DNA of 63,079 nucleotides, filler included, from Bigelowiella natans CCMP2755 (GCA_000320545.1; 8 parts of 8 records of this genome joined end to end with filler, not necessarily neighbours in it), one strand, 5' to 3'. Counted from the whole stretch's first letter, positions 12,472-48,576 are shown. Numbers and translations are program-made. The notes: generated from the letters alone by a model not told the origin.

Positions 12472-12812
12472 TGTGTGTGCGCGCGTGTGTGTAATTTGCA
12501 GTCGTTCCGACGAAAACGTACCCCTTCTCTGCAAGGAAACTCTGTGCATATGTCTGGAGAGCGAAGTTCAGGGCTACACCCTACAAATGGTGATCATGAT
12601 GATGATGGGAATGATGATGACGACGCTGACTATAATGCGGTGCTACGATGTAGGTATGAGTCATCACAATCGAGAATAGTAACAGCTTCTTCTCCACGCC
12701 GTCGTCATCGTCGTTGTTGTTGTTGGTATTGAATGCTGTGGTTATTACCGGGCCTTTGAGGAAATACGCACGATGTCCAGCAACGCGCGCTCCCTGTACA
12801 TATATTTAAATA

Positions 12813-12854
<42 letters not shown>

Positions 12855-13013
12855 AATATTACTTTGCGTATTGTGTGTAACTAATTACCCTCTCAGGATC
12901 GTAGCCATCGATGCGAGAAAGCAGCTCATGATGGTGAAGGAGGCCTCCTTCTTTGCCTCCCCTGCAATGTGCCGTCGTCACACACCCATATGCACAGCAT
13001 TATATGCATAATG

Positions 13014-33949: not shown

Positions 33950-35476
33950 ATGTCGATATCGTCTTCGCGTATCGGCTCTTCGTTATGTCGACACCCACAA
34001 GACCTAAGACCGCAGACCAGCATATCCACGTTCACACCCCCATCGGAAAGCGAGCGGCGGCTTGCAATTGGCTTTTCAAAGTCCGGGGAGCTTAAACACC
34101 TTGATCAGTATAACCCAAAACTGACTAAAAATGAAATTCGGGAGCTCAAGAAAATTCTGTCGCCCGACGGGAAGCACTTCGACGTAATACTGAACGACGA
34201 AAGTAGTCGTGTGTGTATGTTTGTGTCTGTCTCTGTGTTCGTTGTTTGACGTCAATTCGTGGCTTGTTGCAGCCAATTCCTGAACCTGATGAAGACGATT
34301 GGCTGGGTTGGCGAAAGGCCAAGCATCAGAGCTTCCGATCATACGTGAAATCGAAGCCGAAGAAGTACAAACCGGGAAATCAAATATACCTTCTCCCCCT
34401 CTCGGCTGATGGGACGCTCGATGGTTTTCCGCCCATCTCAGTTCTATCTGAGGTTGTGGAAAATTTTTTTGGGATCAAAACTGCAATTTTAGACGCAGTG
34501 CCGATCAGAAAATTGGGTAAAATTAGAACACGCGAGAAGTATGATGAGGAGGATGATGAGGATGGTTGGATACAATACAATGCGATGGATATACTCGACG
34601 CAATGGGCTTCCGCAAGCCCCAGGATTCGCACACACTTTGCGCGGTCACTATGCTCGATATTTACAAAGGGGGATTTAACTACTTATTTGGTCTAGCACG
34701 TACAAGGGGTGGAGTAGGCGTGTTCAGCTTTTCCCGTCAGGATCCTGCTGTGCGCTCATGTGAGTTCTGGAACGGGAGCTCGAAGCGTGGTCCGGGGGAT
34801 AACGAAAAGCTCCTTAGGCGTGCCTCGGCAACCCTATGTCACGAAATTGGTCACACATTTGGGCTCAAGCATTGGTAGGTGCGCGACACAATGATCGCAG
34901 TGCATTAAGTAGCGGCGCAGAGATTGATTCTCTAAGTGATGACTTTATAATCTTGGAAATTTTATACTCGTTCCCCTCATTTGTTTTCCACCTTACCGCA
35001 GCACCTTCTTTCGATGCCTGATGCAAGGGTCTAACTCGCTCAGGGAGTCGGAAGACAGAGGCATGCAGTTGTGCCCTGTCTGCTTGCGGAAGCTTCATTG
35101 GAACACAAGATTTTCCTTAGCAAAGAGATATGCAAATATGGCACATATTTTCGAAAAGCATCATGAGGTTTTCTCCCAGGCTGGTGAACGGATTCGAAGC
35201 CGTCTGGATATTACCGGGATCCAGGTTGGCGATGAGGATGTGACATCAAGGATTGCACGATTAACTTTAAAGAGGGTAGCAAAACCTTTTACACCTCGGT
35301 CTAAATTTAAATCAAGGACGGCAAAATCACCAAAAGTAATAGCCGTTGCACCTCAGCAGGCTAAATCCAATTCACCAAAAACAAAATCACCTAAAGAAAA
35401 ATCACAGAGTGTTGGACGGACTTATAGTCGCTCCCGAGATCGTGTAAAGAGCGAGCTAAAGAGTCCAGAAACTTAG
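33950..35476 (+). CDS. Archaemetzincin (peptidase family M54), 3 exons
   Basis: CHEIGHTFGLKHC|TFFRCLMQGSNSLRESEDRGMQLCPVCLRKL gives HExxHxxGxxH plus the four-Cys archaemetzincin motif. Also FNYLFGLA...GVGVFSFSR. Confidence 0.92.
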
Positions 35477-36293: not shown

Positions 36294-36994
36294 TTACTTT
36301 TGCTCCGCGGTGATCTCGTCAAGTGCTGCAAGGATCTCCGAAGCATCAGCACTCTGGAGAGCAGCAGCTCCTGCAGCGCCAGTAGCAAGAGATCCGATAA
36401 ACTGAAAGAAAAATGAAAATTATAGCATTCCGTTTACTAAAATATCTTAGCCAGGTGTTCTATAGATTTCAAAAATTTTCTATGTAAATTTCATGCCCCC
36501 TTAATGTGAAAAATGTAAGTATGTCATTGGTATATTACCCCACGGCGACGAGTAGTCTTCTTAGCCTTTCCTGCCTTTGCTTGAGCTTCAGCACTCATAT
36601 CAGTAAGCTGGTTTTGAGCAGGGCCAAGAATGTTGAACCCAACCCATGCAAGTACTGGAACGCCAAGGAAAGCAATCTTGGATAACCTGCCGTCAGTCTT
36701 CTTTAGCTCTGCAACCTGATTAATCTTCTGAGCACGGGAAACAAGGGCCATGTTACGGTTCATAGCTTGATGAACTTGAGCGTTGGAAATCCTTGGAAGG
36801 GTCATAGCGCGGGTGTTCGACATAACTGGAGCAGCAAGCTGAGGAGCAGCGAAAGCTCCCATGCATGCACAAGCAACCAGGCCGATACAAGCAACGGCAG
36901 AGACTGCAAGAACAGCCTTCTCGAGTTTGCTGTATGCCGACTTCTTGCCGGATTCAAGATCAGTGTAAGGGATGTTGAGATTCACGTACGACAT
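36294..36994 (-). CDS. psbY: Photosystem II PsbY precursor with bipartite plastid-targeting leader, 2 exons (36994-36539, 36401-36294)
   Basis: Mature region DGRLSKIAFLGVPVLAWVGFNILGPAQNQLTDM matches the PsbY pattern (DxR...P.laWv.fNIl.Pa.nQl..M). N-terminal hydrophobic signal AVLAVSAVACIGLVACACMGA is followed by a basic transit-like segment. Confidence 0.85.
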
Positions 36995-37992
36995 TTTCAA
37001 GGGGGGCGAGTACAGATGGCTTATGCCGATTACGAGACACGAAACACTGTATTTTCAGATTCAACCTGTCAGAGCCCGAGGATTTCGTATTCTTAATCTC
37101 AGGGAAATAATTTGAGAAGACTTGAAAAATACAAGTAACATTGCAATATAATTCGGCATCTTAGAAATGCCGTCGGCATTTCACTAGTAATATATTCTGA
37201 AACACCTCCCGGTCCAAAAGATGCGTAGAGGGCCGGGATTCTGTGATTGGTAATTAAATGCAACCGTATTTATATGTAAATATGTCCACTTTTGTTGTCG
37301 CTCTAAAAATTTGAAAAATTCTGTCTTGTTGTGACCACTCTTATCGACAAGCATGTTTTCCGTCGAAAAGATGCGATGTGATTTGGAGAATTGGACGAAA
37401 TGGCATGCGAAATTGGAATTCGCATCACTAAAGAGCCATTTTGATCTCAGCAAAATCTCCGCAACAAACAGCTTATTTGTCGCAAAACAGTAAGATATTT
37501 GAATTACGACAATAAAAACTCATTGACGAAAGAGAATAAAGCGTCTATCGACATTTGAGGAAAGAGGCCGCTTGCCGATTGTGAACCTTATGAGAGCACT
37601 CATGCGAATCTCCCGTTCGAAAGAGTGCTTTCGGAGATGCGAACATCGAAAAACGCAACACCAATACTCAGGTTTTCGCGCGTTTATTGGATGAAATGCT
37701 GGTTGTTTTTGGCAAACGCCTGGTTGCAGCTGGACATATTTGGATTTTCTTCCGACAACGCCAGCCCAGCAGCTCGACGGCTTCGGAAAAGGAAGCAAAA
37801 CGCCGTAGGGATTATTTGAAAGTAGACCAATGTGCACTTTTTTGGAGAAAAGTGCAGTAAATTTCACAAATTATACCTTTTTCGTATGTCATCATTATCT
37901 GAAAAATCAAACTGAACGACTTCGGATGGCGCCTGGCGTTCTCGGCCGTAGATCTCCGTTGATCCGATGACGGCGGACTGTCGGTGGATGGA

Positions 37993-40900
37993 ATGATTCC
38001 GCAGAGCCACCATACACTTCAAAGTCATCGATGCTATCGTCATATTCGAACTCGATATCAGGGCCTTTTCTGGGCTTTTTTCCTGGGCTGCAGCGGCATC
38101 TTGCTTGTGTTCGGTTCGAATGAGCATTTCGCCACTCGTGCCAACGAGCACCGTATCAGCGCATCTGCCCCATCCGTCTCCTCCATCATCGATCCAAATC
38201 AGAAAGACCAGTTGCTTCAGAAAATAACGCCGGTGAAAGATGCTGGAGGGGAGATCGAGGCCGATCATCATCGTCTGGCCTCGATGTACACCGGAAGGGC
38301 TTGGAATCCAAATGCAAACCAGTTACATCGCCTGTGCATCGCTACGGAATCTCTTGCCTTTCAGCTCGTGGTGTCAGCTGCGACGACGATGGTTACGGCA
38401 GCAACGACAACAACTCCAGTAGCCTCTCCCCCGCCTGCCACCTGCCGGCCGGTGCAAGAATACAGCAGCGAAAACGATGTGGGAGGAATACCTGGGTTTA
38501 TAACAGCGAAGAAACTCTATCTCCAGCAGAAAGCATTGCGAGGTGGTGGGGCAACTATAGTCCCGCATAGGACGCAAGGTAGTGACATAACACATCACAA
38601 TGTCTTTGATGAATCGTAAGAATACAAGCAATTACTTTTATATCAATGATCACAGTAGGGGAAGGATCGGCAGCTGCGACACAGTTTTCTCGACACTGTC
38701 ATCATGGCTACCACCAAAAACAGCAACAGCAACACCAGGATCAGCGTCAACACCATTGCTGGGGTGTGAGAATACAGATATTCCCAACGATCGGCAGAAG
38801 AACAGGCCGTGTCTTAACTGACGTCGTTGAATTGCAACCTCGCCGATCGCTTCAACAGCCAATGCCTCAATGCGAAAGGAAAGACATCAGCATTAGCGTG
38901 AACACTGACGACAAAACTAAGCATTCGCCTTCACAGTCGGCAATCGATAAGGGCGGTACCTGGACATTGGGCTCATATTACAGTCGCACAATGGCACTCG
39001 ATGTGGCGTGCATCGTACAGACGTTACTCGTTGGGCCGATCACGTCCTCTCGAAGCTCATCACTCCGCGAGGCGACGCTTCACCTCACCCGACAACTTTT
39101 AGAGGGAGGGGGGGCGGAGGAAGGAAGTATGAATAGCGATGGCGGAGCGAATCGTATTGATGGTGGTAGTGGTGGCACTTTTGTGCCCCGCACCGACCAC
39201 CCTTCCTCCCCCAGCTTTCTCTTCGATTCCGCATTTTACCAGCATTTGAAAACAGTGGAGCAGTTAGGGTACTATGTGCAACATGGCAAACGCCCACAAT
39301 GAAATAATGCAAACATTGCTGCCATGCCCTTGACCTTTGCGACAATTATCTCAGAATCTGGAAGACTTTTCCTGAAATACCGATAATTTTTTGTCCAAGC
39401 ACTTGATGATAGTCTCTCATCTCACCTCGATTTCTTCTTCCAAAGCATTCTAACGACAATTATTGACTAAATCCCTTCTCCTCCTCCTCCTGCTCCTCAG
39501 GTTCTCCAAACTAGCAGATATGTACTATGATGCACTAGCCGCCATCCGAGAGGGGCTTACTCATGCAACGAAGCGTATTCAGCAGCTCCTTGCACTTCAG
39601 AGAACGCTCAATTTAACGCGCATCCCTCGGACGATTGAGGCTTATGACATCAGCCACTGCCAGGGGTATGGAACTGTCGCCTCGAAAATTGTGCTCAAAG
39701 ACGGAATCCCCGCCACCCACCGCTATCGCTGCTTCAAGGTGCTTTCTGAAGGAGAGGGTCGGGGTACAGGACCTCCTTGCCCCCCCCTTCAGCCCGCAAT
39801 GCATTCCGACGACTGTAAGTCGATGCAGGAGGCAGTGTTCAAGCGCTTTTCTCGGCGGCGCTGGAAGGGGCGTCGTTTACACGATGATGAGGGGAGAAAC
39901 GAAGAAAGAGACGAGTTGGGAGGGGGTAGTGACTACTACAATAGCGACAGCCAGAAAGTAAAGGAAGGTGAGTGGGAGGATGACGAGCTGCCTGATCTTG
40001 TTCTCATTGATGGAGGAAAGCCACAGCTTGGCGCTGCGATTAAAGGGCTCAATGCTGCTCGCATTCGTGTAGGAATCGACGTTGATGTAGCTGCCTTGGC
40101 AAAGCGCGAGGAGCAGCTGTTTGTGCTTGGAACAAAGACTCCAGTTCCGACCAAGGGAAGGGAGAGCAGCGACATTCTTCTCTGTAATTACCTTTTTTTC
40201 TAATTTAAAAGTTGGGGAGAGCAAGATTGTGTGGTGGTACAGAAGGTGAAGGAGAAAGCGAGGGGAGGGAAAGGAGGAGAAGAAATAATGCTGATGATGA
40301 CAATAATAATAAGAATATAATGAAGAAAATAAGAAATCTGCAGCTCCTTTCTTTTCAGTTTCATATTGCCAGAATAGTACGTTTGTCTTTTCTTATACGT
40401 GTGACTCACATGTCACGATACTACTAGCAACACAAATGATCCGAACGATGCTCTTTTGGTGATATGCGGTGGTGATGGTGGTGGTGGTGGTGGTGGTAGC
40501 GTCAAATGTCGTCAACTCCCATGTAATTGCACCTCCATTACTTTGAATTCTTTGCTTATGCACGCAATGGTTTCTCCAATCAACCCCTCTATCCCCCCCC
40601 CCTCCTTTTTCTCCCCTCCCTCTTTCCCTTTGTCCGCATCCGTCCGTTTTCTCCTGGATCTTCTCTTCCATCAGGTCGGAAGGCTCGCGACGAGGCGCAT
40701 GCAATGGCGCTTCTCACCCACCGCACGCTGCGTCACCAGAATGCGATCTCGAGCCAAATCGACGCTATATGCCATGGAATCCTCCTCCCAGCAAGCAAAC
40801 ATCGGCAGGCGCTGGCCGAGATGTTTCCTACCCCTCGCTCCCTCGCTAAGACCACACCGATCAATCTCGCAACGAAGACAGGAATGCCCCTCGCCACAGC

Positions 40901-42290
40901 GCGCAGGATACTCGAGAGGGTGGCAGCAGAGGAGGGGGGGGGGGAGGGGGGTCCTACCAAGGAAAGAAAGGGGAACGAGGAGAAAAACGGTAAATCGGGT
41001 GGTTATAAAAACTTCTGGAGCTGGAGAAGAAACAGAGGCGAATCATCATCCGCTAACAGTACCAGCAGCAGCAATGGTGACAGCTATTCCTCGGAAAGAG
41101 GAAGGGATGTCTCGGGTGTTGTTGAGCGTGTTGCTAAGATGCCGTCAGCTGTCAGCGCCCTCGCTTCTGCCACCTATGGAGGTGAGCGCCGTCGTCCACC
41201 ACCACCACGACGACGACGACGATGACGATGATGATGATGATGATGATGATGATTCACATTTCATTGCCCAATCAATCTGTATTGTCATGTGCCGGATTCC
41301 ACTCATTGATGATATGCGGCATCTTTGGACACCAGGTCGCTTCGATCAACTAATGCGAGCTCTTGAGCAGAAGGAGGAGGGAAAGGACAGCGCTGCTGCA
41401 GCAGCAGCTTCTGGAGAAGGGGCCACACCTTTTGGAACTATGACTACCAGCGACAATAATATGTGGGATGGTACGTTCACGACACACTTGAGCTACTTCC
41501 TCCTCGGAAAATTCTTTCAAAAACACAGGCCATATGCACAGACGTAGGCTGGTACACAAACATGCAAACATACCTGCCCCTCTCCTCTCTTCCTCCTCTT
41601 CTGCATTTGAATACCACCTCTCCTCCTTGAATATTTTCAGAGCGACTGGCCAAAGTAGCACAATCAGCAGCAGCTCAAGAGACATCGGTGGCAGAAGTAG
41701 CAAAAGCAGCAGCCCCCTCGCCATCTCACTCACCAGCATCCCACTTGAAAATACACAAAAGCCAACTTCATCACAGTCACTTACCCCCTGGAGAAAGAAA
41801 GCCGAAGAGTCCGATTTCAAAGGTGGGAGAAATGGCGCTATCACCACCAAGGCCACAGCCATTGCGTGGGATGAAGGCCAAGGTCTGGTGGAGGGAACAT
41901 GGCATCCTGCAGCGGTACTACAATAGCAGTTTATATTGCATTTGCGTGGAAAACGACAATGGCATGAACAATCGCTTGGGAGATAAATATTAAATTTGTG
42001 TGCACGCGTGTGTGATTGTGTGTGTGTGTGCGTGTGTTCTTGCAATAATATAGACAATGTAATCTATATATGAGTATATTCTTGCATGTCCCCTCCAAAT
42101 AATTGACGTATTTATTGGTTAATTTTCGCTGATGCTATTTCTCCTTTTTTCCTGTAATCGTTAGCTCTGAGTTGGCCACAGAACCTCAGTCGTTAAGCGG
42201 CACCTTGGACCTACTTCAAACACTCCTCTCTCACCTTCGCCTTCTCGGGCCTACTACTACGACAACGATGACATGTAATTCGACCCAGAG

Positions 42291-42322
<32 letters not shown>

Positions 42323-43759
42323 CGCTCCCGCTATCAGCAGCGCCCTCGTCGTCATCAGCAACATCGTCGTCATCGTTGTCGTCATATCCTCGTTCATCTC
42401 TGCAAGAAGCCGCGACGGAAGGTGCTGCTCTCGTATCTGCTGGTCGCAATGGGGTCAAAGATGGTAGTAATGGGGACGGTGATGAGAATGTTAATGCAAA
42501 GGAGGGCAGAAGATCGTCCAGTCCTCCTCCTCCCTCGGTGCCTTTGTCAGAGCTGCTGCAACGCTTTTCTCGACTTCTTAACACAGAAAGCAGGCTCCTT
42601 CCCCACGGTAGTAATTACCGCTCTCCATCGCATAAATTAGCTTTTCCATGCCGTCGTCCACGTTCATGTTTTTCGCCATGTCACATTCTAATTGCCAAAA
42701 CCTCTTCCCCCCCACCTACCCGCTACCACAACCAGCACAACGAAAGCAGCAATCCAAGAAGGGGGGCCGAGGAAGGGAAGACGGATTGAAGAAGAGAAAA
42801 AGAAAGAAAAGGGGTGATGGGTACAACTATGATGGGGCCGACGATGATAAAGACGAAGATGATGGATTACACGACGACGACGACGACAAAAACCACGGCG
42901 GCCAACTAACAGGCAGAGGGGAGCTTCGGGTCAACGATACAGCTGATATTTTGCTGTCGCTTATCATGAAAAGCGGTCGTGATGATAAACCCAAATCCAA
43001 GGGGAAAGAAGGAGCTCGATCGGCCAGCAGTAGCAGCAGCGTCCGTGCGTATTCCCGCCCCTATCAGAGCCCTTTGAAAGCTGGCGAGGAGAGGGAGAGA
43101 GAGGAAGAGGAGGAGTTGCGACAGAGGATGAGTGTGATGCAGGGAGGAGGAGGAAGAGGAGGTGAAGCGTTGGCGGGGGATGGCTACCTGGAGATCATTA
43201 AGAAAAGGAATTTTCGGAGGAAGGCGGGCCGCATAAAGGATACAACGAGGCGTTTCTCTGTAACACAGATCACGTAGCAGTTATTGTTGTTAGTGTTGAT
43301 GATATGGACGCTGCAATGCGCTGAAGAGGGGGGGGTAGAAGAAGGAATAGAAGGAATGACTCTCTCTCTCTCTCTCTCTCTCTTTGTGTGTGTGTGTGAG
43401 GTTACGTACAAACAACAATCAACAGCATTAACTGTTTTTGTCGTTCATCATACCTTAGGTTGTTTCGCCCTTCCAGCCAACACAAGAACAGCAGAAAGCA
43501 ATAAACTTGCTCGATGGGTAGTGTAAGATGAGTAGTCACAACTGTTTTGCATCTGTTTTAAAGAGGAGACATTCAAACAATAATGCACTCACAATCAGGC
43601 TGCTGTCTAACGACACTCGTCGGTTCGCTGTGCTGAAAGGAGCAACTGGTGGCTGAATTGTTTACGACATAAAGCGACATCTCTTTTGTATCTAGCATAA
43701 ATCATATGTGTGTGTGTGTGTGTGTGAATGTGTGTGTATAAGAAGAATAGAAGGAATGA

Positions 43760-43804
<45 letters not shown>

Positions 43805-44422
43805 GTATGCGTGTGTGTGTGTGCATGTGCTCTTTGTCTCCTGCACTCTTTTGATTAGGCACTGGCAAAACTTTCATCATGGCAAATCTTGTGGAGAAAA
43901 TGCAGATGCCGACATTATTGCTTGCTCCGAATAAGGTGATGCATGATGGTGATGCAGCGTTGTTCTCTATGCCTGTAGTGTTTATGCGAGACGCTGTTCT
44001 TAACTCCCTCGCCCTCACCTACTTGTTATTTCGCGTGTGGAGCAACCCCAAATGGCTCCGTCACTGCAATTTCTAAAGCAGAATCTTCAGCGCTTTCGTC
44101 GCGCAGATGAACCATCCCGACATTACTACTACGCCCTCCATGAGAATAATACGATACATTGCGTTGATGACACATCTACCCAGGTCCTGGCGGCGCAGCT
44201 GTATAACGAATTTAAGACGCTGTTCCCAAAGAATAAGGTATGGATGAATGGTGAGGGTTTGCATGCACATAGTACGCGGTGCTTATTCTGCAAAGTAGGC
44301 GTGTGCTTTTCCAAGCTCTTATTCAATCTTACGGCCCTTCTCAAAGTGTTGCGTGTTTCTGTATCTATCCCTTCCTCTCATTACCCCCCTCTCCCCCCCT
44401 CCCTCCCTTCCTCCCTCCCTCC

Positions 44423-44462
<40 letters not shown>

Positions 44463-44630
44463 CTCAATTAAGGTCGAGTATTTCGTGTCATACTACGACT
44501 ACTACCGGCCTGAGTCATATCGAGCAGTAGGAGACGTCTATTCTGACAAGGTGCCGGTGATTGATTGATTGGGATGCTGCCACCTGTTAGTAGCACATAA
44601 GAAATATGCGCACATTTGCACACGTGTATG

Positions 44631-44674
<44 letters not shown>

Positions 44675-44852
44675 CGTGTGTGGGTGCGTGGGAGAATATA
44701 TGGGTGGTACGTGGCACTCATACATGAGTGCTCTTTTATTGTAGGAGAAAAGCCTTATTCCCCGTTGTCATCCCTTGCTATTAGGTCGCGAAGATAAACC
44801 AGCAAATCGATCGTATGCGCCACTCAGCAACTCGGTACGTGCGAGTGTTGAA

Positions 44853-44897
<45 letters not shown>

Positions 44898-45229
44898 CTT
44901 GCTGTTTGTCTATCAGTTTGTTCTCTCAAAAGCACATGCAGAGTATGATGATCAAACACACACACACACACGCACGCACACAATATATTGTTGCGGTACT
45001 ACCCGCAATGATCCTTGTTTTCGTTTGTTACGATGTTTAAAAGCTCGTTGTTTGAACGCTCCGACACACTGGTCGTCAGTTCCGTCTCATGCATTTACGG
45101 TGATGATACACATGCTGCATTCTCACCTGCTAACGAGGAGGGAGGGGAGAGGGAGAGAGAGATAGAGTAAAGGAGAAATTAAGGAGAGGAGAGGTCATTC
45201 TAGATGTAAGCGTGAACATGACTACTGTG

Positions 45230-45272
<43 letters not shown>

Positions 45273-45788
45273 ACCGTATTTGTTTCGCTGTATATGTACT
45301 CCTCTACTCCCCCCTCCCTGCTGTTTTGTATGGCACTAATCACCATCATCGGCCTGGCCTCTCCTCCTCCTCCTCCTCCTCCTCCTCCTCCTCCTCCTCC
45401 TAGGGTTGGGGATGCCTGCTGAATACCTCCAAAACGCCTTCCGCGTGCATATCGGCGCGCGTGTGAGCCCTGTCTCTCTCTGCGAGCAGCTCTCTTCGAT
45501 TCGGTAGTAAAAGCGTGTAGTTAGTTAGCGGTAGCATCAATGGGTTCGGACCGTATAATGACAAATTTGAGAGGTAGTGCTCGCAGACAGATCCTTCCCT
45601 CGATTGCTGTTGACCTTCGCTTGCCATGCGAAGGAACCCCCCTCCTCCCAACTGTTTTCTTAACATGTTTTTCTCTTGATGCGGCTAGATACGAGGACAC
45701 GCCGCCATTTGAACCAATTGAACGTGGAGGGTTTCGCTTTCTTCTCGGAGCTAATTCGAGGTCGTCGTGTGCTTTGGAAATCTTCTCC

Positions 45789-45833
<45 letters not shown>

Positions 45834-46799
45834 AATGTTTGTGTGTGTGTGTGTGTGTGGCGGGGGGGGAAGAGAGTAAGAGGGAGAATAGGTTGAAGGC
45901 GCATAGGCACTGATTTATCTTTTCACGCTTCACACAGTGGAATCCGCTACGTTGGCAGCGCACGCTCGTGGTTATCACACAACCAAAATTCATCCATTTT
46001 TTTGGAGATTTGGCCCGCATACGAGACCAGAATTCTGACGATGGAGCTTGCTCCGCTTACCCCCCTCCCCTGTAACGACGTTACGAGCAAGAACTCCAGT
46101 GGCTATAGAATGGAAGGCGGCGAGTCTATTCATGGAATGAAGGCGGTTGATAAGAGAACATTCTTTGGCAGCGATGAGAAGAAAGCAGAAGCAGTGGGGG
46201 AAGAAAGATTCCAAGATTTGGACGGAGCAGCCCAACGATTATCATCATCATCGTCAACAACAGCAGCAGAACCTTCACTGTCAACTCCTAATGAAACCAC
46301 GCTATTATCACCACCACCACCACCCCAACCAACGCACACAATCATATCGATGAAATTCTCCCCCCCACCCCTCAAAGGCGACTCTTCTTCTTCTTCTTCT
46401 TCGAGCTTTAACGCTACAGCTGTGACGAATCTTCCTACCCCTCCCCATGCGAACTCCACCCGCAGCGATGACAGAGCGAGGATGGCCGTCGAGACCAAGA
46501 GAAAGGGAGGGAAGGAAGAAGAAGAAGAAGAAGAAGAAGAGGTTGGCTGCCGCAATATTTGCTGATGTTGTTGGGTATATCACTTTCGCCTTGGAACAGA
46601 ACGTCGTGTGTTGATATATTCTAGTCATAGGAAGAATCAGGCGCAATGCCCCTTCATCTATGTAGATGTATATAATTGGTGTGTGCGTTTACGTGTGTGC
46701 GTACATTATTTATCAATATCCCAACAGCACCAGCCCGGACACACCCTCATTCTTAAAGATGGGGAGGTTGAGGAGGAGGGGGAAGAAGGCACCGACGAT

Positions 46800-46834
<35 letters not shown>

Positions 46835-46940
46835 ATTGAAGCACCGGCAGCAACAGCGGTCTCAGGCTGTAAGCAACTTCGTGATATACCCTGCCTCCCA
46901 CCACATCGTCACCAAGGAGGAGAAGGTCTGTACTACTATT

Positions 46941-46978
<38 letters not shown>

Positions 46979-47200
46979 GGAAGGCGCACTTCTCAGCCAT
47001 TGCTATCGAATTACCATCTCATTGCCATACGCGATCACCGTATGGAGCTCTGGAGACACACATATGGAAAGGGGGGTGGGGTGGGGGGGTATTACAACAT
47101 GATATGGTGATACAGGGTGGCGTAGCCTATACGCAAGTAGATACAGGAGAGTGGTGCTCTTTTGGAAGTTGTTCTTCCTGAATATTCAGCATGCAATATG

Positions 47201-47236
<36 letters not shown>

Positions 47237-47801
47237 ACTCCTCGTTCTCTCGCCCCCCCCCCCCCCCTCTCTTCCGCTCGCAATGCCTTGACACGAACCT
47301 ATGCTTCAGGAAAGAGTCTTTCGACATATCAGGGAAGAGCTCGATATACGGTGAGGAAGGGGTTGGGGGGGGGGGGACTCTCAGAGTTGTGTATACACCG
47401 TCATCTTATCTTTGCGTAATGAATGCCTATTAGGCTGGGAGAGCTCAGAGCATATGGAAAGGAGATGGAGGCGAAACGATTGGTAGTTTAAGAAGAATGA
47501 TAGTAATGACGATGACGATGACGATGATGATGGTGATGATGATGATGAGAGAGAGATGATAGAGAGAATACAAAATCTTTCTTTATCGAATGTGCGCGTC
47601 CAGGCCTTTCGCACAGAAGCAAATCTGGAAGCTTTGGAAACGCTCGGGTACTGTAAAGGGGTGGAGAACTATGCGCGTCATCTCGCAGGTATGTGGCGAC
47701 TGTGCTTTATACTCAACGATTTAACGCTACATAAGAGCTTGGAGTGTGTGAAAGGACTGCCTGTATAAAACACAAAGAACCATGCGAGAAATATGTATAT
47801 A

Positions 47802-47841
<40 letters not shown>

Positions 47842-48281
47842 TATATTATGTGTTGGAATCATTCATCAATGCCCTGCCATACACATTTCCAATATGATCA
47901 AATTTTTAAATCCATCCTTACACCCTTGTCCCCCCCTTCCCCCCCCCACCTTCCCTCCGCTCTCTTCTGGACGGAAAGGGAGGAACCCTGGAGAGCCTCC
48001 AGAAACTCTCTTGGATTACTTTCCCTACGATGGGCAGTGGATGGTATGCTAAGCGTGAAGTAGTAGTAGTAGTAGTAGTAGTAGTTGTTGTTGTTCTTGT
48101 TGTAGTAGAAGTAGGGGATGCTGTCATTATTATTAGTGTTCCTGCTGCTGCTGCTGATGATGATGAAATTGACGGGGATGATTTAATAAGAATGATGAAG
48201 ATGATGATTCAATTCATAATTTTGTGTTGTTGGCGTAGCTAATGGTGGATGAAAGCCATGTCTCTCTACCACAGATAAGAG
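37993..48281 (+). CDS. Putative spliced UvrC-UvrB fusion protein with N-terminal signal-like peptide, 3' part missing at the gap
   Basis: UvrC motifs: IEAYDISH, SDD..SM, PDLVLIDGGKPQL, LAKREE, RDEAH and an HhH-like tail. UvrB motifs: FSVVSPFQP, GATGTGKT, APNK|VLAAQLYNEFK, VEYFVSYYDYYRPE, DRMRHSATR, SVSCIYGLG, GVENYARH, TLLDYF and VDESH. All linker splice junctions are phase-compatible. Confidence 0.7.
39502..40930 (+). CDS. uvrC: UvrC RNase H-like endonuclease and HhH portion of the locus
   Basis: YDISH / DD / IDGG / RDEAH catalytic motifs across two exons (39502-40183, 40676 onward). Confidence 0.9.
43459..48281 (+). CDS. uvrB: UvrB helicase portion of the locus (N-terminal half visible)
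   Basis: Walker A GATGTGKT, beta-hairpin FVSYYDYYRPE and Walker B VDESH, spread over many short exons. Confidence 0.92.
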
Positions 48282-48312
<31 letters not shown>

Positions 48313-48576
48313 CCAGGAAAGAGAAGAACAAACATCTATGATTCTTGATTCTATGACACACAATATAAAATCATTATTTTGCATCCTCCGTTTACCCTTG
48401 TGGCATTGCTCCTCCCCCCNNNNNNNNNNNNNNNNNNNNNNNNNNNNNNNNNNNNNNNNNNNNTTAATTAATTAANNNNNNNNNNNNNNNNNNNNNNNNN
48501 NNNNNNNNNNNNNNNNNNNTCTCCCCCCCCCCCCCCCCCCCCCTCCCTTTCTTTTCCTCTTCTCTAATATAAACCT

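Follow-up and report, generated by a model that had tools for sequence, protein, structure and literature searches.

A nuclear gene of Bigelowiella natans that very probably joins the C-terminal half of UvrC to the helicase UvrB, and its relatives among algal UvrB/UvrC fusions

We analysed a stretch of DNA of the chlorarachniophyte alga Bigelowiella natans CCMP2755 (GCA_000320545.1) of 63,079 nucleotides, filler included (the window), in which a first-pass annotation, made from the sequence alone, had placed a fusion of UvrC and UvrB at positions 37993-48281. In bacterial nucleotide excision repair UvrB and UvrC are separate proteins, encoded by the separate genes uvrB and uvrC. Positions 21517-48419 of the window are the whole of one contig (G000:C1246, 26,903 b) of an assembly of 91.4 Mb in 3,736 contigs, and it is the contig end at 48419, not position 48281, that cuts the UvrB portion. 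What lies at this locus is very probably one nuclear gene of B. natans with at least 19 exons, transcribed, spliced and read in a single open frame, and its features are the following.

37993..38578, plus strand: exon 1, beginning at the first in-frame ATG, with hydrophobic residues 25-39 (LFWAFFLGCSGILLV) and then a neutral to acidic region
38656..39268, plus strand: exon 2, about 200 aa, negative in Pfam, NCBIfam and Atlas searches
39501..40183, plus strand: exon 3, UvrC RNase H/EndoV-like 5'-incision nuclease (IEAYDISH, LVLIDGGKPQL), with a low-complexity insert of about 70 aa
40675..41181, plus strand: exon 4, RDEAH motif and (HhH)2 of UvrC (PRK00558 positions 568-647, E=1.3e-5), then the start of the linker; joined to exon 3 by the junction 40183>40675
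41182-41335, plus strand: intron with a stop of the UvrC frame (TGA 41223-41225), removed in the mRNA; the contig depth seen in 41200-41399 is fully explained by exon 5
41336..43259, plus strand: exons 5-8, low-complexity linker in open frame, rich in S, G, A, R, E and K, with a poly-Thr run
43459..~43938, plus strand: exons 9-11, UvrB N-terminus including Walker A, (F S|)VVSPFQPTQEQQKAI...LKGATG|TGKTF
44181..48419, plus strand: further UvrB exons, matched by tblastn and profile over UvrB positions 41-348, the gene running off the contig here
44181-44240, 44455-44550, 44788-44841, 45042-45113, 47550-47690, 47975-48034 and 48239-48286, plus strand: approximate cores of these UvrB exons, with profile support

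The splicing of the gene was established with RNA-derived contigs from three independent studies (runs X1, X2 and X13) mapped on positions 38000-43999. These runs carry the label 'RNA?', and we take them to be spliced RNA because their contigs skip GT..AG introns, which stand at zero contig depth (for example 40200-40599). As mapped, the joints lie at 38576>38654, 39270>39505, 40183>40675, 41469>41640, 41913>42164, 42606>42735, 43259>43459, 43516>43598 and 43647>43858, while the joint 41181>41336 comes from X1 record 3, which covers 40970-41179, then 136 nt, then 41640-41913. Refined on GT/AG, the junctions are 38578>38656, 39268>39501, 40183>40675, 41181>41336, 41470>41641, 41914>42165, 42607>42736, 43259>43459, 43517>43599 and 43648>43859, with exons at 37993-38578, 38656-39268, 39501-40183, 40675-41181, 41336-41470, 41641-41914, 42165-42607, 42736-43259, 43459-43517, 43599-43648 and 43859 onward. 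All the GT-AG junctions that the first-pass annotation had claimed between the ATG at 37993 and UvrB are present in the RNA contigs of the three studies to within 1-2 bases, the intron phases it gave (1, 2, 1, 1, 1, 2, 1, 0) are correct on the refined exons and, as it had also stated, no stop interrupts the joined exons: the frame is open from ATG 37993 to codon 1255, where the first UvrB motif is itself divided by the junction 43259>43459 (RRFS|VVSPFQP, seen in RNA contigs), and stays open to codon 1363 in the Walker A exon. Exons 9-11 (43459-43517, 43599-43648 and 43859-~43938) are supported by RNA junctions, tblastn and profile matches together, and a loose contig end after 43937 continues into the next UvrB exon (LAAQLYNEFK). 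On the other side of the gene, RNA contigs extend 78-114 nt upstream of position 38000. Altogether, 20 runs from 7 studies contain 13-42% of the sampled words of the stretch; the raw-read RNA run X21, of which about 6% was read, gave 0 reads on the stretch and is no test of expression. Run X18, labelled as a different organism (B), contains 21% of the words, perhaps because the culture was mislabelled or mixed, or because it is a close relative.

Given that bacterial uvrB and uvrC are separate, the locus could instead be read as two adjacent genes, a UvrC-like one ending at TGA 41223 and a separate UvrB gene, with the joined contigs being read-through, conjoined transcripts or assembly chimeras; it would also suit this explanation that the public gene model ends early and that no contig covers everything. 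However, the intron that bears the stop (41182-41335) is spliced out in all three studies and is retained in none of their contigs. The first conserved UvrB exon has a TAG directly upstream and no ATG of its own, so that an upstream exon is needed, and ATG 42648, the only plausible separate UvrB start, lies inside the spliced-out intron 42608-42735; a separate UvrB start is not needed, as had been claimed. The early end of the public model (Bigelowiella_natans Bigna1/141943 of EukProt/JGI, 633 aa, 100% identical to exon 3 over its residues 401-627) has an explanation of its own: the model reads through the donor at 40183 and is therefore truncated, ending 6 aa past exon 3 (...ILLCNYLFF*; window 37993-40200), which hides the remaining gene and leaves the fusion out of the public annotation. 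The RNA contigs break at two places, both within exons, at a G-run (40932-40952) and at a perfect (ACA)11 (42291-42323), the second being a 33-nt repeat, longer than the assembler's 31-letter word. Since, moreover, a paralog on contig C2728 encodes the last part of UvrC and the first part of UvrB in the same exon, and the green alga Cymbomonas has the same order (both described below), we consider two adjacent genes extremely unlikely.

For the UvrC portion, domain searches were done exon by exon, the joined sequence being used in scripts for the frame check and the tree rows. Exon 3 matches PF08459 (E=8e-27), positions 395-557 of PRK00558 (NCBIfam) and, in the PDB, the UvrC C-terminal domains 2NRR (E=8e-13), 2NRT, 8B0Q and 3C65. 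Exon 4 matches, besides PRK00558, positions 535-614 of a custom UvrC profile (E=7e-10), and the Pfam HhH models themselves gave no match to it. IEAYDISH, LIDGG and RDEAH can be aligned with motifs of bacterial UvrC and presumably carry the UvrC catalytic Asp, Asp and His. In total the gene covers positions ~374-614 of the 616 of the UvrC profile, namely the RNase H-like nuclease and the HhH region, and the GIY-YIG 3'-incision nuclease was not detectable in it with Pfam, NCBIfam or the custom profile. A cryptic GIY-YIG was also sought in the N-terminal ~400 aa (exons 1-2) with Pfam, NCBIfam, the custom UvrC profile and the ESM Atlas (TM <=0.25, poor model), and none was found; nor did the Pfam and NCBIfam searches recognise any domain in exon 1. 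No PF02151 (UVR) match occurs in the exons of the gene. The UvrC-UvrB fusion proposed in the first-pass annotation stands, then, as one spliced mRNA with both domain types in one frame, and has to be corrected in its extent, the UvrC part being the C-terminal half only.

Elsewhere in the assembly we did not find the missing pieces. No UvrC N-terminal half is present (genome-wide, TIGR00194 matches concern positions >=351 only), the five GIY-YIG loci outside the gene are SLX1-like or unrelated, with none of UvrC type, and a UVR motif was not found at the fusion loci, its only match in the genome being a weak one on an unrelated contig (C3427). A partner UvrA, which the first-pass annotation had suggested looking for in related algal transcriptomes, was not found in the B. 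natans assembly either: PF17755 and PF17760 gave no match, and TIGR00630 only generic ABC-signature matches of <=32 bits.

Between the two portions lies a low-complexity linker that measures 545 aa in the joined open frame, in agreement with the long linker that had been predicted. On the UvrB side, the N-terminus is colinear with bacterial FQVVSDFQPTGDQ, a beta-hairpin with aromatics of the YYDYY type (EYFVSYYDYYRPESY) is encoded at 44455-44550, and the SF2 helicase core is represented within the window by Walker A (GATGTGKTF) and by VDESHV (48239-48286). The next UvrB exons of this gene are found on small contigs with the preceding numbers, C1245 (L026:364-453, plus strand; UvrB profile positions 358-387) and C1244 (L027:635-2289, plus strand; positions 404-550, with motifs V and VI, VGVNLLREGLDLPEV and LIQIIGRAARH), from which we take the scaffold order to be C1246 > C1245 > C1244. 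Neither C1243 nor the remaining assembly yielded the final UvrB exons of this gene (profile positions >550). For UvrB domain 2, the UvrA-binding domain, there is no PF17757 match genome-wide and no profile match at positions 150-262, a region that is split by introns and in which weak pieces, FFGDLARI among them, can be seen. For the C-terminal UVR of UvrB, the match of the paralog stops at profile position 629 of 673 with no UVR match, and the 3' end of the window copy is unassembled. The predicted protein would, in all likelihood, read in this order: a hydrophobic leader, about 360 aa without known domain, the C-terminal half of UvrC, the 545-aa linker and the UvrB helicase. Compared with bacterial UvrABC (for example Thermotoga maritima UvrC, PDB 2NRR/2NRT), it has the same RNase H-like 5'-incision domain with (HhH)2 and the same UvrB helicase features (Walker A, beta-hairpin YYDYY, DESH), whereas here one intron-bearing nuclear gene of a eukaryote encodes both modules as a single covalent chain, no GIY-YIG, UVR or UvrA was detected, and the linker and an N-terminal leader have been added.

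A second gene with the same order lies on the plus strand at G000:C2728:87344-97650 (loci L016 and L017), with UvrB profile positions 4-629. The two copies can be aligned at conserved motifs only, with 36-72% identity, their N-terminal regions and linkers being unalignable, and we therefore take them for old paralogs and not for haplotypes. In the C2728 copy an uninterrupted frame of 490 aa (90600-92069) holds LSSVPGISIELAQLIKSYLS and, ~370 aa downstream of it, the UvrB N-terminus and Walker A. UvrC profile positions 594-613, the final HhH hairpin, are matched by the LSSVPGISIELAQLIKSYLS segment, weakly when it is taken alone but colinear with the preceding exon. As that frame runs from the end of UvrC into the beginning of UvrB, the fusion in this paralog does not depend on the splicing argument.

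The N-termini of the two paralogs differ. That of the C2728 copy starts signal-like (MQFVSIFVSVVAHYQWQA) and continues into a basic, S/T/A-rich, transit-like segment (K+R 12, D+E 1 in 70 aa), while in the window copy the segment after the hydrophobic stretch is neutral to acidic (K+R 7 vs D+E 8). Organelle targeting, with a role in plastid DNA repair, had been predicted for the window gene, and its hydrophobic N-terminal leader is, by hydropathy and charge, as expected for an endosymbiont-derived compartment. Taken together, the hydrophobic leaders of both paralogs would fit import into endosymbiont-derived compartments, possibly different ones; the plastid is one candidate, and B. natans has a nucleomorph and a mitochondrion as well, next to two paralogs whose leaders differ.

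It could also be proposed that the gene is a decaying relic, still transcribed and no longer a working repair enzyme, considering that GIY-YIG, UVR and UvrA were not found, that the low-complexity inserts are long and that the branches in the trees are very long. Against this, the frame is open over more than 1360 codons across 10 junctions, spliced RNA contigs come from three studies, with words of the stretch in the 20 runs mentioned above, and both B. natans paralogs have kept their catalytic and ATPase motifs intact. Such conservation, in two copies that can hardly be aligned elsewhere, implies that these motifs are under purifying selection, and a relic seems to us very unlikely.

Relatives of the gene were sought with exon 3 against 1.84 billion representatives in a profile-free search, where the only close match was the B. 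natans model itself; a search with this protein (P0001) returned no other chlorarachniophyte protein. A more distant match is a protein of Cymbomonas tetramitiformis (KAK3278592.1, 950 aa) with UvrC_RNaseH, HhH and the N-terminal part of UvrB. On the Cymbomonas contig (LGRX02005368.1; L030, 3650-21390), UvrC positions 388-608 lie in one exon and are followed, colinear and on the same strand, by UvrB positions 18-577. The UvrB exon at 12721-12990 bridges two annotated models (950 aa and 428 aa), so that the annotation is split and a single UvrC'-UvrB gene is present. As in B. natans, no UvrC N-terminal half was found upstream, over the 4.7 kb that this contig offers; the Cymbomonas gene differs in having a linker of 159 aa, its UvrC part in one exon and an annotation as two genes. 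Its second model carries an HRDC domain after UvrB.

Another exon 3 match led to a protein of 1,458 aa with the opposite order, UvrB first, and a length-restricted search for UvrB together with UvrC in long proteins (P0164-P0283) returned many such proteins. Those with names come from diatoms, Triparma, Chromera and a red alga, among them proteins of Nitzschia, Cyclotella, Thalassiosira, Cylindrotheca, Seminavis, Pseudo-nitzschia, Triparma, Chromera velia (A0A0G4F0M2) and the red alga Rhodosorus. With custom UvrB and UvrC profiles we counted at least 101 strict fusions, all of them UvrB-first and the named ones all algal. These proteins, which appear as 'Excinuclease ABC subunit B' (for example in Chromera velia A0A0G4F0M2, Nitzschia inconspicua, Cyclotella cryptica, Triparma and Rhodosorus marinus), are likewise eukaryotic, nucleus-encoded and single-chain. 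In them the UVR domains are missing, the C-terminal tail of UvrB included, and UvrB domain 2 is strongly diverged (its length is kept, with 28% identity to the bacterial consensus vs 52-56% for the other domains), traits of UvrB that the B. natans protein may share. They differ from it in that UvrB comes first, the GIY-YIG part is kept in 99 of the 101, the HhH tail is found in none (0/101) and they form a separate clan. Some unnamed clusters with the UvrB-first order contain hundreds of metagenome members.

A UvrB tree was obtained by a quick search; its branches are very long, and its row for the window copy is both short and on a long branch. It unites the two B. natans copies with Cymbomonas, their nearest relative there, in a single clan (SH-aLRT 96), the UvrB-first fusions making up another (SH-aLRT 100) and the bacteria sampled yet another (97). 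These bacteria are the best word-sharing matches only, a biased sample whose few named members include no cyanobacterium. The tree of the UvrC part was unresolved and uninformative. The first-pass annotation had suggested a phylogeny for each half, and its suggestion that the same domain order be sought in related algae is borne out by Cymbomonas and not by the at least 101 other fusions, which are UvrB-first. The B. natans gene shares with Cymbomonas the order, the UvrC boundaries and the clan, and is set apart from the UvrB-first fusions by its order (UvrC, then UvrB), by the absence of GIY-YIG and presence of HhH, and by its position outside their clan. Judged by these sequence comparisons, it very probably belongs to a small green-lineage UvrC'-UvrB family, whose known members are two divergent B. 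natans paralogs and Cymbomonas and which is distinct from the widespread algal UvrB-UvrC fusions. The gene does not stand alone: UvrB/UvrC fusions are widespread in algal proteomes, in the opposite order, and since UvrB-first proteins are numerous in databases under automatic names, the B. natans fusion is not a unique invention. Full-text literature searches found no paper describing either design, and the gene is a rare variant with UvrC first and without GIY-YIG, within an algal fusion class that is undescribed and yet visible in the databases.

Cho, a UvrC homologue with the GIY-YIG nuclease only (families: PMC1564403), indicates that the two nucleases of UvrC can occur and function as modules independent of each other. 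Cho is in this respect the mirror image of the B. natans protein, as it keeps the 3'-incision half without the EndoV-HhH half and is not fused to UvrB. It is also relevant that the E. coli UvrBC complex is able to find lesions without UvrA (PMC5814901). A possible mode of action for the B. natans protein would begin with import of the fusion into an endosymbiont-derived compartment, where UvrB might load on DNA and verify bulky damage without UvrA. The tethered nuclease would then nick the damaged strand 5' of the lesion, this 5' nick being the only one made, and the covalent link would substitute for the UVR-UVR contact through which bacterial UvrC is recruited; a second cut, or flap removal, could be left to another enzyme. 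More broadly, we put forward as a tentative and rather doubtful proposal that green-lineage algae and chlorarachniophytes run a UvrA-independent, single-nick excision repair and that the two paralogs may serve two endosymbiont-derived genomes. Under this single-nick proposal one nick would mark the bulky lesion, with strand displacement or flap removal to follow, and the paralogs, whose leader is basic and transit-like in one copy and neutral to acidic in the other, could serve plastid and nucleomorph, or plastid and mitochondrion.

Several points weigh against a single tethered enzyme that works in this way. The 5' cut of E. coli is normally made after the 3' cut of GIY-YIG, and the activity of a lone 5' nuclease half is for this reason only a predicted one. 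The failure to find UvrA refers to a gapped assembly in which genes are split by introns, the targeting is predicted from hydropathy and charge counts only, and, since the fusion is known from DNA and RNA, its product could be cleaved after translation. At the level of the transcript, the whole gene from UvrC to UvrB is spanned by no single contig or long read, and contigs reveal neither transcript starts nor transcript ends, so that a real fused mRNA could be accompanied by a promoter in the linker region giving a UvrB-only protein from a Met of exon 8, with tethered and free UvrB side by side. In-frame Mets are indeed present in exon 8, and in X13 the 3' contigs (from 41408 onward) are 2-3x deeper than the 5' ones (66 and 48 vs 21 and 26), a skew that could be due to 3' bias or to an extra internal start. 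On the other hand, X1 (16.5, 14.7, 22, 24.9) and X2 (15, 14.9, 16.6, 21.1) show an even contig depth from one end of the gene to the other, and the 3' bias of a poly(A) library accounts for X13 equally well. An apparent alternative 5' piece, a loose 63-nt end at 41399, was rejected as a first exon since it maps to contig C1252, which has a common CAG-repeat stretch, and a 'joint' 41422>43143 (CC..AG, with a 20-nt side) was rejected as an artefact of the same type. We regard an additional UvrB-only isoform as unlikely.

Bacterial UvrABC is regarded as a prokaryotic system, and organelles are commonly described, to our knowledge, as devoid of nucleotide excision repair. Here, an expressed eukaryotic gene ties UvrB permanently to one of the UvrC nucleases, and no UvrA is detectable in the genome concerned; among algae, UvrB/UvrC fusions of two designs are common. 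Such fusions are natural experiments on the need for UvrA in the search for damage, on the purpose of the UVR-UVR contact and on the uncoupling of the two incisions, and they make the repair of organelle or nucleomorph DNA in complex algae directly testable. They also reveal that public models are wrong, the B. natans one being truncated and the Cymbomonas one split in two.

Around and within the gene some further features were seen. Upstream, an ORF at 34213-34875 (plus strand) has a weak match to Peptidase_M54 (archaemetzincin; E=2e-4, below the Pfam cut-off) and is probably an exon of a neighbouring gene, and just upstream of the gene, on the opposite strand, lies a 158-aa ORF at 36524-37000 (minus strand) with a hydrophobic segment and no family match. 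(CT)n and (GT)n microsatellites crowd the introns (43350-43400, 43690-43810, 44420-44460, 44850-44900, 45230-45270, 45790-45830 and 47200-47240), and codon repeats in the exons encode runs of Thr, Ser, Asp, Glu and Gln, such as the (ACA)11 at 42291-42323.

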